From assembly GCA_964057225.1 (NCBI GenBank), contig CAXKVF010000075.1, forward strand, positions 248,001 to 312,000: a stretch of DNA of 64,000 nucleotides, in the 5' to 3' direction. This DNA comes from Auanema rhodensis (lineage: Eukaryota > Animalia > Nematoda). The notes under the pieces were generated by a model. The model saw only the letters and a list, made by a program, of their open reading frames with translations. It had not been told where the DNA came from and did no database searches. The stretch's first letter is position 1, and each line of letters starts with the position of its first letter. Positions 1 to 64,000 of this stretch are shown in pieces. Both the position numbers and the translations under genes were made by a program.

Positions 1-3000
1 CAAGTGCACATCACGTGTACATTTAATTAGCATAAATTAAAGTTCACGTAAATTTCAAAGTCATGGTTACCATGAACCAATATCAATAAAAATTTGTTTT
101 TAGACTAATATGGACATGGGGAATCTAATTTTGAAAACCGCATCTCTTTATCTTTCACGTGAAGCGAGTTACATACCAAGTGCACATCACGTGTACATTT
201 AATTAGCATAAATTAAAGTTCACGTAAATTTCAAAGTCATGGTTACCATGAACCAATATCAATAAAAATTTGTTTTTAGACTAATATGGACATGGGGAAT
301 CTAATTTTGAAAACCGCATCTCTTTATCTTTCACGTGAAGCGAGTTACATACCAAGTGCACATCACGTGTACATTTAATTAGCATAAATTAAAGTTCACG
401 TAAATTTCAAAGTCATGGTTACCATGAACCAATATCAATAAAAATTTGTTTTTAGACTAATATGGACATGGGGAATCTAATTTTGAAAACCGCATCTCTT
501 TATCTTTCACGTGAAGCGAGTTACATACCAAGTGCACATCACGTGTACATTTAATTAGCATAAATTAAAGTTCACGTAAATTTCAAAGTCATGGTTACCA
601 TGCACCAATATCAATAAAAATTTGTTTTTAGACTAATATGGACATGGGGAATCTAATTTTGAAAACCGCATCTCTTTATCTTTCACGTGAAGCGAGTTAC
701 ATACCAAGTGCACATCACGTGTACATTTAATTAGCATAAATTAAAGTTCACGTAAATTTCAAAGTCATGGTTACCATGCACCAATATCAATAAAAATTTG
801 TTTTTAGACTAATATGGACATGGGGAATCTAATTTTGAAAACCGCATCTCTTTATCTTTCACGTGAAGCGAGTTACATACCAAGTGCACATCACGTGTAA
901 AATTAATTAGCATAAATTAAAGTTCACGTAAATTTCAAAGTCATGGTTACCATGAACCAATATCAATAAAAATTTGTTTTTAGACTAATATGGACATCGG
1001 GAATCTAATTTTGAAAACCGCATCTCTTTATCTTTCACGTGAAGCGAGTTACATACCAAGTGCACATCACGTGTACATTTAATTAGCATAAATTAAAGTT
1101 CACGTAAATTTCAAAGTCATGGTTACCATGAACCAATATCAATAAAAATTTGTTTTTAGACTAATATGGACATGGGGAATCTAATTTTGAAAACCGCATC
1201 TCTTTATCTTTCACGTGAAGCGAGTTACGTACCAAGTGCACATCACGTGTACAATTAATTAGCATAAATTAAAGTTCACGTAAATTTCAAAGTCATGGTT
1301 ACCATGAACCAATATCAATAAAAATTTGTTTTTAGACTAATATCGACATGGGGAATCTAATTTTGAAAACCGCATCTCTTCATCTTTCACGTGAAGCGAG
1401 TTACATACCAAGTGCACATCACGTGTACATTTAATTAGCATAAATTAAAGTTCACGTAAATTTCAAAGTCATGGTTACCATGAACCAATATTAATAAAAA
1501 TTTGTTTTTAGACTAATATGGACATGAGGAATCTAATTTTGAAAACCGCATCTCTTTATCTTTCACGTGAAGCGAGTTACATACCAAGTGCACATCACGT
1601 GTACATTTAATTAGCATAAATTAAAGTTCACGTAAATTTCAAAGTCATGGTTACCATGAACTAATATCAATAAAAATTTGTTTTTAGACTAATATGGACA
1701 TGGGGAATCTAATTTTGAAAACCGCATCTCTTTATCTTTCACGTGAAGCGAGTTACATTCCAAGTGCACATCACGTGTACATTTAATTAGCATAAATTAA
1801 AGTTCACGTAAATTTCAAAGTCATGGTTACCATGAACCAATATCAATAAAAATTTGTTTTTAGACTAATATGGACATGGGGAATCTAATTTTGAAAACCG
1901 CATCTCTTTATCTTTCACGTGAAGCGAGTTACATTCCAAGTGCACATCACGTGTACATTTAATTAGCATAAATTAAAGTTCACGTAAATTTCAAAGTCAT
2001 GGTTACCATGAACCAATATCAATAAAAATTTGTTTTTAGACTAATATGGACATGGGGAATCTAATTTTGAAAACCGCATCTCTTTATCTTTCACGTGAAG
2101 CGAGTTACATACCAAGTGCACATCACGTGTACATTTAATTAGCATAAATTAAAGTTCACGTAAATTTCAAAGTCATGGTTACCATGAACTAATATCAATA
2201 AAAATTTGTTTTTAGACTAATATGGACATGGGGAATCTAATTTTGAAAACCGCATCTCTTTATCTTTCACGTGAAGCGAGTTACATACCAAGTGCACATC
2301 ACGTGTACATTTAATTAGCATAAATTAAAGTTCACGTAAATTTCAAAGTCATGGTTACCATGAACCAATATCAATAAAAATTTGTTTTTAGACTAATATG
2401 GACATGGGGAATCTAATTTTGAAAACCGCATCTCTTTATCTTTCACGTGAAGCGAGTTACATACCAAGTGCACATCACGTGTACATTTAATTAGCATAAA
2501 TTAAAGTTCACGTAAATTTCAAAGTCATGGTTACCATGAAGCAATATCAATAAAAATTTGTTTTTAGACTAATATGGACATGGGGAATCTAATTTCGAAA
2601 ACCGCATCTCTTTATCTTTCACGTGAAGCGAGTTACATACCAAGTGCACATCACGTGTACATTTAATTAGCATAAATTAAAGTTCACGTTAATTTCAAAG
2701 TCATGGTTACCATGAACCAATATCAATGAAAATTTGTTTTTAGACTAATATGGACATGGGGAATCTAATTTTGAAAACCGCATCTCTTTATCTTTCACGT
2801 GAAGCGAGTTACATACCAAGTGCACATCACGTGTACATTTAATTAGCATAAATTAAAGTTCACGTAAATTTCAAAGTCATGGTTACCATGAACTAATATC
2901 AATAAAAATTTGTTTTTAGACTAATATGGACATGGGGAATCTAATTTTGAAAACCGCATCTCTTTATCTTTCACGTGAAGCGAGTTACATACCAAGTGCA

Positions 3001-3696
3001 CATCACGTGTACATTTAATTAGCATAAATTAAAGTTCACGTAAATTTCAAAGTCATGGTTACCATGAACCAATATAGATAAAAATTTGTTTTTAGACTAA
3101 TATGGACATGGGGAATCTAATTTTGAAAACCGCATCTCTTTATCTTTCACGTGAAGCGAGTTACATACCAAGTGCACATCACGTGTACATTTAATTAGCA
3201 TAAATTAAAGTTCACGTAAATTTCAAAGTCATGGTTACCATGAACTAATATCAATAAAAATTTGTTTTTAGACTAATATGGACATGGGGAATCTAATTTT
3301 GAAAACCGCATCTCTTTATCTTTCACGTGAAGCGAGTTACATACCAAGTGCACATCACGTGTACATTTAATTAGCATAAATTAAAGTTCACGTAAATTTC
3401 AAAGTCATGGTTACCATGAACCAATATCAATAAAAATTTGTTTTTAGACTAATATGGACATGGGGAATCTAATTTTGAAAACCGCATCTCTTTATCTTTC
3501 ACGTGAAGCGAGTTACATACCAAGTGCACATCACGTGTACATTTAATTAGCATAAATTAAAGTTCACGTAAATTTCAAAGTCATGGTTACCATGAACCAA
3601 TATCAATAAAAATTTGTTTTTAGACTAATATGGACATGGGGAATCTAATTTTGAAAACCGCATCTCTTTATCTTTCACGTGAAGCGAGTTACATAC

Positions 3697-6160
3697 CAAG
3701 TGCACATCACGTGTACATTTAATTAGCATAAATTAAAGTTCACGTAAATTTCAAAGTCATGGTTACCATGAACCAATATCAATAAAAATTTGTTTTTAGA
3801 CTAATATGGACATGGGGAATCTAATTTTGAAAACCGCATCTCTTTATCTTTCACGTGAAGCGAGTTACATACCAAGTGCACATCACGTGTACATTTAATT
3901 AGCATAAATTAAAGTTCACGTAAATTTCAAAGTCATGGTTACCATGCACCAATATCAATAAAAATTTGTTTTTAGACTAATATGGACATGGGGAATCTAA
4001 TTTTGAAAACCGCATCTCTTTATCTTTCACGTGAAGCGAGTTACATACCAAGTGCACATCACGTGTACATTTAATTAGCATAAATTAAAGTTCACGTAAA
4101 TTTCAAAGTCATGGTTACCATGAACCAATATCAATAAAAATTTGTTTTTAGACTAATATGGACATGGGGAATCTAATTTTGAAAACCGCATCTCTTTATC
4201 TTTCACGTGAAGCGAGTTACATACCAAGTGCACATCACGTGTACATTTAATTAGCATAAATTAAAGTTCACGTAAATTTCAAAGTCATGGTTACCATGAA
4301 CCAATATCAATAAAAATTTGTTTTTAGACTAATATGGACATGGGGAATCTAATTTTGAAAACCGCATCTCTTTATCTTTCACGTGAAGCGAGTTACATAC
4401 CAAGTGCACATCACGTGTACATTTAATTAGCATAAATTAAAGTTCACGTAAATTTCAAAGTCATGGTTACCATGAACCAATATTAATAAAAATTTCTTTT
4501 TAGACTAATATGGACATGAGGAATCTAATCTTGAAAACCGCATCTCTTCATCTTTCACGTGAAGCGAGTTACATACCAAGTGCACATCACGTGTACATTT
4601 AATTAGCATAAATTAAAGTTCACGTAAATTTCAAAGTCATGGTTATCATTCACCAATATCAATAAAAATTTGTTTTTAGACTAATATGGACATGGGGAAT
4701 CTAATTTTGAAAACCGCATCTCTTTATCTTTCACGTGAAGCGAGTTACATACCAAGTGCACATCACGTGTACATTTAAATAGCATAAATTAAAGTTCACG
4801 TAAATTTCAAAGTCATGGTTACCATGCACCAATATCAATAAAAATTTGTTTTTAGACTAATATGGACATGGGGAATCTAATTTTGAAAACCGCATCTCTT
4901 TATCTTTCACGTGAAGCGAGTTACATACCAAGTGCACATCACGTGTACATTTAATTAGCATAAATTAAAGTTCACGTAAATTTCAAAGTCATGGTTACCA
5001 TGAACCAATATCAATAAAAATTTGTTTTTAGACTAATATGGACATGGGGAATCTAATTTTGAAAACCGCATCTCTTTATCTTTCACGTGAAGCGAGTTAC
5101 ATACCAAGTGCACATCACGTGTACATTTAATTAGCATAAATTAAAGTTCACGTAAATTTCAAAGTCATGGTTACCATGCACCAATATCAATAAAAATTTG
5201 TTTTTAGACTAATATGGACATGGGGAATCTAATTTTGAAAACCGCATCTCTTTATCTTTCACGTGAAGCGAGTTACATACCAAGTGCACATCACGTGTAC
5301 ATTTAATTAGCATAAATTAAAGTTCACGTAAATTTCAAAGTCATGGTTACCATGAACCAATATCAATAAAAATTTGTTTTTAGACTAATATGGACATGGG
5401 GAATCTAATTTTGAAAACCGCATCTCTTTATCTTTCACGTGAAGCGAGTTACATACCAAGTGCACATCACGTGTACATTTAATTAGCATAAATTAAAGTT
5501 CACGTAAATTTCAAAGTCATGGTTACCATGAACCAATATCAATAAAAATTTGTTTTTAGACTAATATGGACATGGGGAATCTAATTTTGAAAACCGCATC
5601 TCTTTATCTTTCACGTGAAGCGAGTTACATACCAAGTGCACATCACGTGTACATTTAATTAGCATAAATTAAAGTTCACGTAAATTTCAAAGTCATGGTT
5701 ACCATGAACCAATATTAATAAAAATTTGTTTTTAGACTAATATGGACATGAGGAATCTAATCTTGAAAACCGCATCTCTTCATCTTTCACGTGAAGCGAG
5801 TTACATACCAAGTGCACATCACGTGTACATTTAATTAGCATAAATTAAAGTTCACGTAAATTTCAAAGTCATGGTTATCATTCACCAATATCAATAAAAA
5901 TTTGTTTTTAGACTAATATGGACATGGGGAATCTAATTTTGAAAACCGCATCTCTTTATCTTTCACGTGAAGCGAGTTACATACCAAGTGCACATCACGT
6001 GTACATTTAAATAGCATAAATTAAAGTTCACGTAAATTTCAAAGTCATGGTTACCATGCACCAATATCAATAAAAATTTGTTTTTAGACTAATATGGACA
6101 TGGGGAATCTAATTTTGAAAACCGCATCTCTTTATCTTTCACGTGAAGCGAGTTACATAC
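3697..6160. repeat. Tandem 7-monomer (1232-bp) duplication within satellite
   Basis: Rare consecutive variant monomers (TATTAAT/GAGG/AATCT/TTCA, then GGTTATCATTCACC, then TTAAAT+CACC) occur at 4401/4577/4753 and again at 5633/5809/5985. Confidence 0.9.
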
Positions 6161-61952: not shown

Positions 61953-62173
61953 CAAGTGCACATCACGTGTACATTTAATTAGCATAAATTAAAGTTCACG
62001 TAAATTTCAAAGTCATGGTTACCATGCACCAATATCAATAAAAATTTGTTTTTAGACTAATATGGACATGGGGAATCTAATTTTGAGAACCGCATCTCTT
62101 TATCTTTCACGTGAAGCGAGTTACATACCAAGTGCACATCACGTGTACATTTAATTAGCATAAATTAAAGTTT

Positions 62174-62202
62174 CATCACGTGTACATTTAATTAGCATAA
62201 AT
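62174..62202 (+). repeat. 29-bp direct re-copy of satellite monomer positions 9-37 at the retroelement 5' junction
   Basis: CATCACGTGTACATTTAATTAGCATAAAT at 62137-62165 is repeated exactly at 62174-62202, after TAAAGTT and one extra T. Confidence 0.95.
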
Positions 62203-62304
62203 CGTTGACCTAGTTTCCTCGTTGACCTAGTTTCCTCGTTGACCTAGTTTCCTCGTTGACCTAGTTTCCTCGTTGACCTAGTTTCCTCGTTGACCTAGTT
62301 TCCT
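62203..62304 (+). repeat. Six perfect tandem copies of 17-bp CGTTGACCTAGTTTCCT
   Basis: Units start at 62203, 62220, 62237, 62254, 62271 and 62288; no mismatches; unrelated to the satellite monomer. Confidence 0.98.
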
Positions 62305-62504
62305 GGCCACGGAAGGTGATCCCTGCTCTGCTCTGTTCGTTCCTGCCGTCTTCAGCCGTATCTGTCTGGATTTTATTCGTCGGATTGGTTTTTTTTCAAG
62401 GTACGCTCACTTTTTCTCTCGTTCTTTTTTTCTCTTCTTTTTATTTATCTTCACTTTATTTATTTATTTTTTTTTTCTCTCACCTCTCTTTATATTGTTT
62501 CATT
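62305..62504 (+). promoter_or_regulatory. Putative LINE 5' UTR / internal promoter region with long pyrimidine (T-rich) tract
   Basis: Lies between the 17-bp repeats and the first ATG (62505); ~62389-62504 is dominated by T/C runs. LINEs generally use internal Pol II promoters. Confidence 0.6.
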
Positions 62505-63578
62505 ATGTCTTTTGTGACCAATGATTTTCTTACAAGTGCTCTCGAAACATTTTCCAAATCACTTGAATGCTCATTTGCTAAACTTTCAAGCGATATAAAA
62601 AATGAGCTTAATTGTATGAAAATCAAAGTCAGTTCTCACGAGGCTCGCTTGAACCTTATCGAAACGGATTTCAAATCTCGTTTGGAAAAGTTAGAGCAGA
62701 AGCTTGCCAGTTTTTCTCAACCATCTCCTCACTGTAATTCCGTTTCCATTGCATCATCTTCCCAATTAAATGTTGCATGCCAGCTACAAAAATTGAGATC
62801 AGAGGAGACAAAATACTCTTACCGCAGTAACCGGGCTCTCTGGTTTCGCGTACCTTTGACTTCAGATGAATTTCCAAACGATCCACTTTCATTATTGAAA
62901 CTCATCGTCAAGAAGTCCAATGATAGTACTTTGTCTTCTCTTATCGATAGCAACCAAATCACAATTGCACGCTCTACTCTCAAATCAAACTTTCCTGGTC
63001 CCTTAATTATTACTTGTCCCTCCATCGATTTACGAGACAGAACTATCGAGGTTATCAAAGCCAACAAATCTAAGTGCTTCATTACTCTTTCCAAAACATT
63101 CCTACGCCGCGACTACCTTCCTTTTGAAATTGAACTAGAAAAAAGTTTACGCGCCGAAGCTAAAATTAAAAATGAAAACAATCTTAAAAGCGTTTTTCTT
63201 GTACGCGATCTCAAACTGATAGAAGTATCTCGTAAACCGATCACCACCCTATCCCCTACCACTAACATCATAGCTACTAATTCCAACGGTCCAATTTCTA
63301 AAACTTCTTATAATACCCACAATTGTCCTGTTTCATTAACCACATTAGACGTTGTTTCTAGTCCTCCTTGTAAATCGGGCAGATCCAGTCGGTCTAAGGA
63401 AAGGCAAAAACCAGTCTCCAAGGATAAAATGCTTTCCATTAGTCCTAGAAGACGGAAAAATCCACCCCGTAATGCCAAGTCTAGTACCATTGAACCAACT
63501 GGACCTATTGCCAGATCTACAAGTAGCCCTCTAGCAACCTCTTTGTCTCTTACGCATGATAACCTGTCCTTTCGTTAA
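62505..63578 (+). CDS. LINE ORF1 protein (357 aa), putative RNA-binding/chaperone
   Basis: First ATG of the track ORF is 62505 (MSFVTNDF...). Heptad coiled coil (LSSDIKNEL...RLNLIETDFKSRLEKLEQKL), RSNRALWFRVP and PGPLIITC in positions typical of an ORF1 RRM, FLRRDY...EKSLRAEA...N...FLVRDLKL CTD-like motif, and an S/T/P/basic disordered tail. Directly upstream of an APE ORF. Confidence 0.85.
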   Translation: MSFVTNDFLTSALETFSKSLECSFAKLSSDIKNELNCMKIKVSSHEARLNLIETDFKSRLEKLEQKLASFSQPSPHCNSVSIASSSQLNVACQLQKLRSEETKYSYRSNRALWFRVPLTSDEFPNDPLSLLKLIVKKSNDSTLSSLIDSNQITIARSTLKSNFPGPLIITCPSIDLRDRTIEVIKANKSKCFITLSKTFLRRDYLPFEIELEKSLRAEAKIKNENNLKSVFLVRDLKLIEVSRKPITTLSPTTNIIATNSNGPISKTSYNTHNCPVSLTTLDVVSSPPCKSGRSSRSKERQKPVSKDKMLSISPRRRKNPPRNAKSSTIEPTGPIARSTSSPLATSLSLTHDNLSFR

Positions 63579-64000
63579 CAATGTTTCTGTCAATACCCAA
63601 TCTAGCTCATTAATCATTTCTAATCTTTCTGTTCACTGTTACAATGCCCGCTCTATTCTTAACAAATTACATCTACTCCCAATCGTTCTTTTGTCTGACT
63701 CCCCTGATATAGTTGCTATATCAGAAACCTGGCTTCATTCTCAGTTTAACACTGACCTATTACCACTGAGAGACACCTACAGTATCCTTAGAGCTGATAG
63801 ATGTACCTCTCGTGGAGGTGGTGTACTTCTTTTCATTAAAAAACACATTAACTTCCGTCTTGTCTCTTGTTCCTCTCATCTATCTTCTGTCCAATTTTTA
63901 AATATTGTAATAACTTCATTAAATGCTGTTTTCTCTATTTGCTACCGCTCTCCTTCATCAACTCACGCCGACTTTTCTGAATATCTTTCGGATATTGAGA
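63556..64000 (+). CDS. LINE ORF2 (pol) N-terminus: apurinic/apyrimidinic-like (APE/EEP) endonuclease domain; open to window end
   Basis: Manual translation from ATG 63556: MITCPFVNNVSVNTQSSSLIISNLSVHCYNARSILNKLHLLPIVLLSDSPDIVAISETWLHSQFNTDLLPLRDTYSILRADRCTSRGGGVLLFIKKHINFRLVSCSSHLSSVQFLNIVITSLNAVFSICYRSPSSTHADFSEYLSDIE. Motifs YNARS (63640), ISETWL (SETW at 63721), DR..RGGGV (RGGGV at 63811) and YRSPS (63943) are canonical; no stop in 148 codons. Confidence 0.95.
   Translation, partial: MITCPFVNNVSVNTQSSSLIISNLSVHCYNARSILNKLHLLPIVLLSDSPDIVAISETWLHSQFNTDLLPLRDTYSILRADRCTSRGGGVLLFIKKHINFRLVSCSSHLSSVQFLNIVITSLNAVFSICYRSPSSTHADFSEYLSDIE

Follow-up and report, generated by a model that had tools for sequence, protein, structure and literature searches.

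A young LINE with a probable exact target site in AT-1, a soma-eliminated satellite of the nematode Auanema rhodense

The TRAS and SART elements of the silkworm are long interspersed nuclear elements (LINEs) of the R1 clade; they are of the endonuclease type and insert at one nucleotide of the non-coding telomeric tandem repeat, with related families taking opposite strands. R1 and R2 of arthropods and R4 of Ascaris insert with nucleotide precision into ribosomal DNA; they have no poly(A), their 3′ untranslated region (UTR) is recognized by the reverse transcriptase (RT), and their 5′ junctions are variable owing to template jumps. All three interrupt functional ribosomal RNA (rRNA) genes; the endonuclease of R2 and R4 is of the restriction-like type. 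G2/Jockey-3 of the Drosophila centromeres is enriched in satellite-rich chromatin; to our knowledge, it has no sequence-specific insertion site. In a review-style introduction, Kojima and Jurka assigned most target-specific families to the early-branched, Tx1 and R1 groups, and listed rRNA genes, telomeric repeats, microsatellites, small RNA genes and other transposons as known targets; YURE of sea squirts is described there as only weakly specific for a U2-derived satellite and as carrying a restriction-like endonuclease (PMC4640811). Here we describe a LINE, referred to as copy A, that lies in arrays of the 176-bp satellite AT-1 in a 64,000-bp stretch of the Auanema rhodense genome (the window; C82:248001–312000 in a 180.9-Mb assembly of 112 contigs). 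We regard it as highly likely that copy A is a young, apparently autonomous non-long terminal repeat retrotransposon of the endonuclease and RT type, which integrates sequence-specifically into AT-1.

By its behaviour, the LINE of copy A belongs with the target-specific LINEs. Like TRAS and SART, it shows one-nucleotide targeting of a tandem repeat, and related families use opposite strands of the same repeat. Different from TRAS and SART, the target is a 176-bp satellite instead of a telomeric unit of 5 bp, the host is a nematode, the LINE has no poly(A), and the protein of its first open reading frame (ORF1) has no zinc knuckles. Compared to R1, R2 and R4, the LINE has an apurinic/apyrimidinic (AP)-type endonuclease, and it targets non-genic DNA that somatic cells do not retain. 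Different from G2/Jockey-3, its insertion site is exact to the base. YURE is the sole published LINE associated with a longer-unit satellite that we found; the specificity seen here, at two exact positions, is near-absolute. In our literature search, we came across no report of a LINE that targets a long-unit non-genic satellite or soma-eliminated DNA.

Copy A and the surrounding AT-1 array

Copy A is 4.7 kb in size; it starts at window position 62173 and ends at position 4891 of the rightward extension L031 (C82:310001–320000; window position = L031 position + 62000), which is 2,891 bases beyond the end of the window. Throughout, position 1 of the satellite monomer is the C of CAAGTGCACATCACGTG. 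The features are given below with window coordinates, strand and basis; TRF stands for Tandem Repeats Finder and FISH for fluorescence in situ hybridization.

1–62172, + strand: 176-bp satellite array, AT-1, the target DNA of the LINE (TRF; exact FISH-probe matches)
62140–62172, + strand: left target-site duplication, 33 bp, monomer positions 12–44 (right copy at L031 4892–4924)
62173–62202, + strand: extra 30-nt satellite-derived piece, T plus monomer positions 9–37 (both junctions genome-unique)
62203–62304, + strand: reiterated 5′ end, six perfect tandem copies of the first 17 nt of the LINE (TRF period 17, 100% matches)
62305–62504, + strand: remaining 5′ UTR, with T-rich tracts (sequence)
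62505–63578, + strand: ORF1 from ATG to stop, 357 aa (open throughout)
63556–64000 and on to L031 4390, + strand: ORF2, 944 aa, the endonuclease part of which starts in the window (Pfam; intact)
Up to L031 4891, + strand: 3′ UTR, 501 nt, ending in ...AATAAACGTCCGAA, without poly(A) (sequence)

The first 62,172 bases of the window form one unbroken array of 353 copies of the 176-bp monomer, with 98% matches and no indels by TRF. On average, a monomer has 1.2 base differences from the array consensus; the 20 closest to the LINE junction have 0–2 each, so the array edge is not degenerate. The published 28-mer FISH probe for AT-1 corresponds exactly to monomer positions 171–176 followed by 1–22 and has 302 exact occurrences in the window; we therefore take this satellite as the AT-1 of Auanema rhodense. 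According to the preprint that describes it, AT-1 is ‘present on all autosomes’ and is eliminated, with its somatic loss seen by FISH; the germline genome is 180 Mb in size, with seven chromosomes and 11 Mb unplaced, and 61% of it is lost from somatic cells, starting at the 12-cell stage (doi 10.64898/2026.08.27.747507). The same source reports tandem-repeat arrays with units of 167–504 nt, and transposon domains in half of the protein-coding genes of the eliminated portion; searching its text for terms brought up no passage on insertion at specific sites (doi 10.64898/2026.08.27.747507). In the assembly, the 31-nt target window of the LINE occurs 152,562 times, which puts AT-1 at no less than 26.9 Mb, ∼15% of the genome.

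Downstream of copy A, the satellite restarts at L031 4892 with CACGTGTAC..., in register and 98% homogeneous, and continues for at least 29 further monomers. The two halves of the target-site duplication are identical (33/33), and deletion of copy A together with one half leaves a perfect monomer. ORF2 starts 23 nt before the end of ORF1 in a different frame, and runs uninterrupted through L031 1556–4390. In the Pfam scan, ORF2 contains Exo_endo_phos (5.6e-10) and Exo_endo_phos_2 (6.4e-10) at residues 40–234 and RVT_1 (4.8e-35) at residues 518–729, and no RNase H family; its active-site motif is YADD. The SETW, GDLNFP and SDH motifs are conserved across all the families described below. No Cys-His motif is present after the RT in ORF2 residues 730–944, and neither ORF1 nor ORF2 contains a CCHC zinc-knuckle pattern. 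In ORF1, a long coiled coil at the N terminus is followed by a central α/β domain and a tail that is basic and disordered; its AlphaFold model contains a 65-residue helix, with residues 6–70 above 90 in predicted local distance difference test score. In a fold search of the PDB, each of the ten best matches to ORF1 was the trimer of human L1 ORF1p, with E values that are borderline (∼1e-3).

A preliminary description of the window, made from its letters alone, had proposed a recent insertion of an intact LINE within a homogeneous, in-register array. The sequence agrees with this in each respect: the array stays homogeneous up to the junction, the 5′ UTR is kept, ORF1 and ORF2 are intact, ORF2 remains open beyond the window, and the satellite resumes downstream with an identical duplication, so that satellite flanks the LINE on both sides.

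Insertion sites of the LINE family and of its sister families

The 18-nt 3′ terminus of copy A has seven exact occurrences in the genome. Five of the seven are followed by CACGTGTACATT, placing the junction at CAT|CACGTG, between monomer positions 11 and 12 (11|12); the terminus of the copy on contig C4 is followed by CGTGTAC, and its junction is 2 bp further on (position 14). The six copies with readable flanks are in the same orientation relative to the monomer and are distributed over five contigs (two on C82 and one each on C81, C83, C5 and C4):

Copy A, C82, in the window: full-length, with six 17-mers and the extra piece; duplication of 33 bp
Copy B, C82, 92 kb from copy A, in an array that is itself inverted: full-length, with a different head; duplication CACGTG, 6 bp
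Copy C83, C83: truncated at element position 3827; duplication of 5 bp
Copy C81, C81: truncated at element position 4207; duplication of 4–5 bp
Copy C5, C5: truncated at element position 2961 and joined to an inverted fragment; duplication not readable
Copy C4, C4: truncated at element position 2323, adjoining a different 350-bp satellite; duplication not readable

Owing to their distinct 5′ structures, duplication lengths and contigs, the six copies represent separate events. If insertions were uniform over the 352 position-and-strand states of the monomer, the chance that five further copies fall on the same strand no more than 2 bp away would be ∼6e-10. The conserved junction of the family is the 3′ junction, CAT|CACGTG at 11|12, common to independent copies of the same orientation. 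The CACGT motif is found three times in each monomer (positions 12, 45 and 156), and only that at position 12 is used by this family. Short target-site duplications, and variable 5′ truncation with a common 3′ end, are hallmarks of target-primed reverse transcription.

These sites bear out the earlier suggestion that the family targets the 176-bp repeat, since five termini share one junction, a sixth is 2 bp off, and all six are in one orientation. The cut that had been placed near AAAT/TAAAG, at positions 34–44, has to be moved: the priming nick maps to CACGTG, and AAAGTT is only the 5′ junction of copy A. By coincidence, the sister families do nick within the proposed interval, at TTA|AAG (39|40), on the other strand.

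Over the 2,835 bases of ORF2, 27 differences separate copies A and B; 20 of them are at third codon positions and nine amino acids are changed, which gives a rough ratio of nonsynonymous to synonymous substitution rates (dN/dS) of 0.16. The differences are mostly synonymous, indicating divergence under selection for function. Among the sampled copies across families, the N-terminal 630–648 residues of ORF2 are free of stops in 17 of 17, and ORF1 is full-length (353–357 aa) and stop-free in 12 of 16. Judged from these sequences, the LINE of copy A is recently active.

Searches with the 5′ 1.8 kb and the 3′ UTR recovered many further copies, 64–82% identical in nucleotide sequence and nearly all flanked by AT-1. 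Family C (∼60% protein identity) ends in ...CCCGTTCAA, and all 41 exact termini continue into ACGTGTACA; its site is 12|13, on the same strand as that of the copy A family and one base over. The opposite-strand families (∼65% protein identity) end in ...CCTTGAC and are inverted relative to the monomer; their site is TTA|AAG (39|40), 28 bp from the CACGTG site. Among their 28 termini, 22 are canonical at 39|40 and two more lie there with four extra bases (24/28 at the site); of the remainder, two are at position 103, representing one duplicated event, and two are outside the satellite. Judged by the 5′ ends, there are at least a dozen independent opposite-strand insertions. Their duplications are 3–7 bp in 12 of 14 cases; one is 34 bp, and one insertion carries a 24-bp target deletion. 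Three pairs of loci (L019/L020, L049/L050 and L052/L053) are exact duplicates.

A maximum-likelihood tree built from the first ∼640 ORF2 residues places all sampled copies of these families in one clade (100/100) on a long stem, apart from the nearest database proteins. Within it, Family C is the first to branch off, and the copy A family groups with the opposite-strand families as their sister, at moderate support (84/83); this order fits a single target switch, from the CACGTG site to the 39|40 site. Sliding-window identity comparing the divergence of endonuclease and RT gave no clear signal of retargeting. The broader reading goes further: at least four LINE families, 60–66% identical in protein, would be specialized on one germline-only satellite, with the endonuclease retargeted once and the lineage essentially confined to discarded DNA. 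We see the chances of this being true as evenly balanced.

Some structures at these sites are more complex. Many of the 3′ ends of Family C are regularly spaced, at 527 bp on C4:13129577–13136422 and at ∼1,963–2,315 bp on C7:480947–549541; the regular spacing indicates that these fragments were co-amplified with the satellite, apparently as higher-order units, and the C7 blocks imply AT-1-like sequence on C7 too. The C5 copy (L075, C5:21796000–21803500, oriented 2420–5138) consists of head-to-head fragments, with element positions 3566–4550 inverted and then 2961–4689 direct; because the two ranges overlap, the arrangement is not that of classic twin priming. Its inverted piece joins the satellite near position 40. 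The C4 copy (L074, C4:4568000–4574500) lies exactly between AT-1 and the 350-bp tandem repeat, which forms inverted arrays, and thus marks the boundary of two satellites.

The 5′ junctions are also complex. Tandem repeats of the first 17–24 nt are present at window positions 62203–62304 and at L045, L042, L056, L003, L005, L007 and L014. The reiteration is found in full-length and in 5′-truncated sister-family copies; L045, for example, has a 19-mer at least three times. Instead of six perfect 17-mers, copy B has three imperfect units of 21–24 nt. This pattern suggests that the RT repeatedly re-copies the last 17–24 nt of its template. Both junctions of the 30-nt piece in copy A occur once in the 181-Mb genome, which has >150,000 monomers; the piece thus arose with the insertion of copy A. 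It was either brought from a parent copy in the satellite, with its junction at position 37 and the upstream satellite transcribed, or acquired by a template switch during insertion. A genome-wide search for such a parent copy found the junction between the piece and the 17-mer in copy A alone. Landing in a pre-existing odd monomer was considered and rejected, because the AAAGTT|TCATCACG junction is also single in the genome. Both long duplications, 33 bp in copy A (positions 12–44) and 34 bp in the opposite-strand copy L007 (positions 6–39), span both target sites; in each, the second cut is 5–6 nt from the nick site of the other families, which may be due to chance.

Proposed mechanism and rival explanations

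From these junctions we propose the following mechanism. The endonuclease of the LINE would nick the bottom strand at 11|12; owing to a one-base ambiguity, 12|13 is possible for both same-strand families. The freed DNA 3′ end would then prime the RT at the exact 3′ end of the RNA, without poly(A), with the RT bound to a ∼150-nt core of the 3′ UTR that is conserved and structured. The top strand would be cut usually 4–6 bp downstream, and 33 bp downstream in copy A. At the 5′ end of the RNA, the enzyme may have slipped in copy A, copying the last 17 nt anew six times. Since AT-1 is absent from all somatic cells once it has been removed at the 12-cell stage, the family would live in DNA where its insertions should cost the host little.

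The 3′ UTR core is common to all families and is 78–82% conserved, better than the coding sequence; 47 pairs are predicted in it, nine of them with compensatory changes. It is located at L031 4520–4700 and in the matching parts of L040, L057, L072, L073 and L071. In an Rfam search with an E cutoff of 1, the LINE had no match to a known RNA family. As in other LINEs without poly(A), the core is a candidate binding element for the RT.

The short duplications, and 3′ UTRs without homology to the target, lead us to infer that the site specificity is encoded by the endonuclease of the LINE itself. The position of the junction could instead be set by homology between RNA and DNA: a read-through transcript with a satellite tail would anneal at any nick, and the boundary would be inherited from the parent copy. 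With no poly(A) and a uniform repeat, read-through transcripts would bear such a tail, the 30-nt piece at the 5′ end of copy A indicates that satellite sequence can travel with the LINE, and the occasional duplications of 33 and 34 bp and the 24-bp target deletion are in line with this explanation. We nevertheless consider it unlikely. It expects duplications across the whole monomer, whereas those observed are 4–6 bp in three of four cases in the copy A family and 3–7 bp in 12 of 14 in the sister families; duplications this short place the breaks at the junction itself. The orientation is fixed despite the palindromic nature of CACGTG, and neither target site is present beyond chance in any of seven representative 3′ UTRs. 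That the satellite was derived from the LINE, or that the LINE carries the target site, was tried as well: the longest shared word is 10 nt, as expected by chance, and the seven 3′ UTRs match neither site better than shuffled controls do; both ideas were rejected for these families.

Ancestry offers a different account of the shared junction, in which one old insertion multiplied along with the satellite when arrays were amplified or segments duplicated. Some sister-family copies were clearly co-amplified, as seen from the regular spacing on C4 and C7, and several loci are exact duplicates. However, the six copies of the copy A family are spread over five contigs, with different 5′ ends and duplication lengths; the substitutions that separate copies A and B, being mostly synonymous, arose during replication under selection and not after a duplication; and families only 60–66% identical in protein share the same two sites. 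For these reasons, a single ancestral insertion is very improbable. Even less probable, in our estimate, is random insertion with survival only in soma-eliminated DNA. AT-1 makes up ∼15% of the genome and is germline-restricted, so weak selection against insertions is expected there; such survivorship could yield enrichment in the satellite, but not one position and strand out of 352.

Several points weigh against site-specific integration by the LINE's own endonuclease as we propose it. The case for the endonuclease is indirect, coming from the short duplications and the missing 3′ UTR homology. The census counts exact terminal motifs and thus leaves out older, diverged copies, and the seventh terminus of the copy A family (C7:10850922–10850939) is not at the canonical junction. 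Since Family C has co-amplified blocks, 41 of 41 overstates the number of its independent events. The somatic elimination of C82, an unplaced contig, is carried over from the preprint.

Affiliation and significance

CR1 elements, to which the preliminary description tentatively likened the family, end in short tandem repeats without poly(A). The 3′ end of the LINE described here is single-copy, with no terminal short tandem repeat. In the R1 clade, ORF1 carries CCHC zinc knuckles; on the two tests of R1 membership, both weak, zinc knuckles are absent and the endonuclease is nearer to L1 endonuclease (EN) than to TRAS1 EN. In a profile search of the PDB, itself a weak test, the endonuclease matched L1 EN (2v0s) with an E of 1.7e-11 and TRAS1 EN (1wdu) with an E of 0.009, and R1Bm EN was not found; phmmer with the endonuclease alone gave no match in the PDB. 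L1 and Tx1 elements are marked by a cysteine-histidine motif after the RT and by poly(A) or an A-rich tail; here, ORF2 residues 730–944 contain no such motif and no A-rich tail is present.

A word-based protein search returned 178 matches, the best of which is 33% identical and almost none of which is named; ESM Atlas matches bear generic names only, and Pfam scans of two database matches and of the C-terminal part added nothing. One ORF2 homologue, P0031, is labelled as a hypothetical protein of a Candidatus Thiodiazotropha taylori metagenome-assembled genome; this is probably DNA of the host that ended up in the bin of the symbiont.

If the endonuclease reads the site, the LINE families of AT-1 provide a natural pair of related enzymes with two exactly known DNA targets, for studies of LINE endonuclease specificity. 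They would also represent a concrete transposon niche created by programmed DNA elimination, and their insertions would be markers to date the growth and turnover of the eliminated arrays. If the specialization of several families on AT-1 is true, their lineage would be a direct test case for eliminated DNA as a transposon refuge, and for transposons that in turn shape the eliminated arrays.

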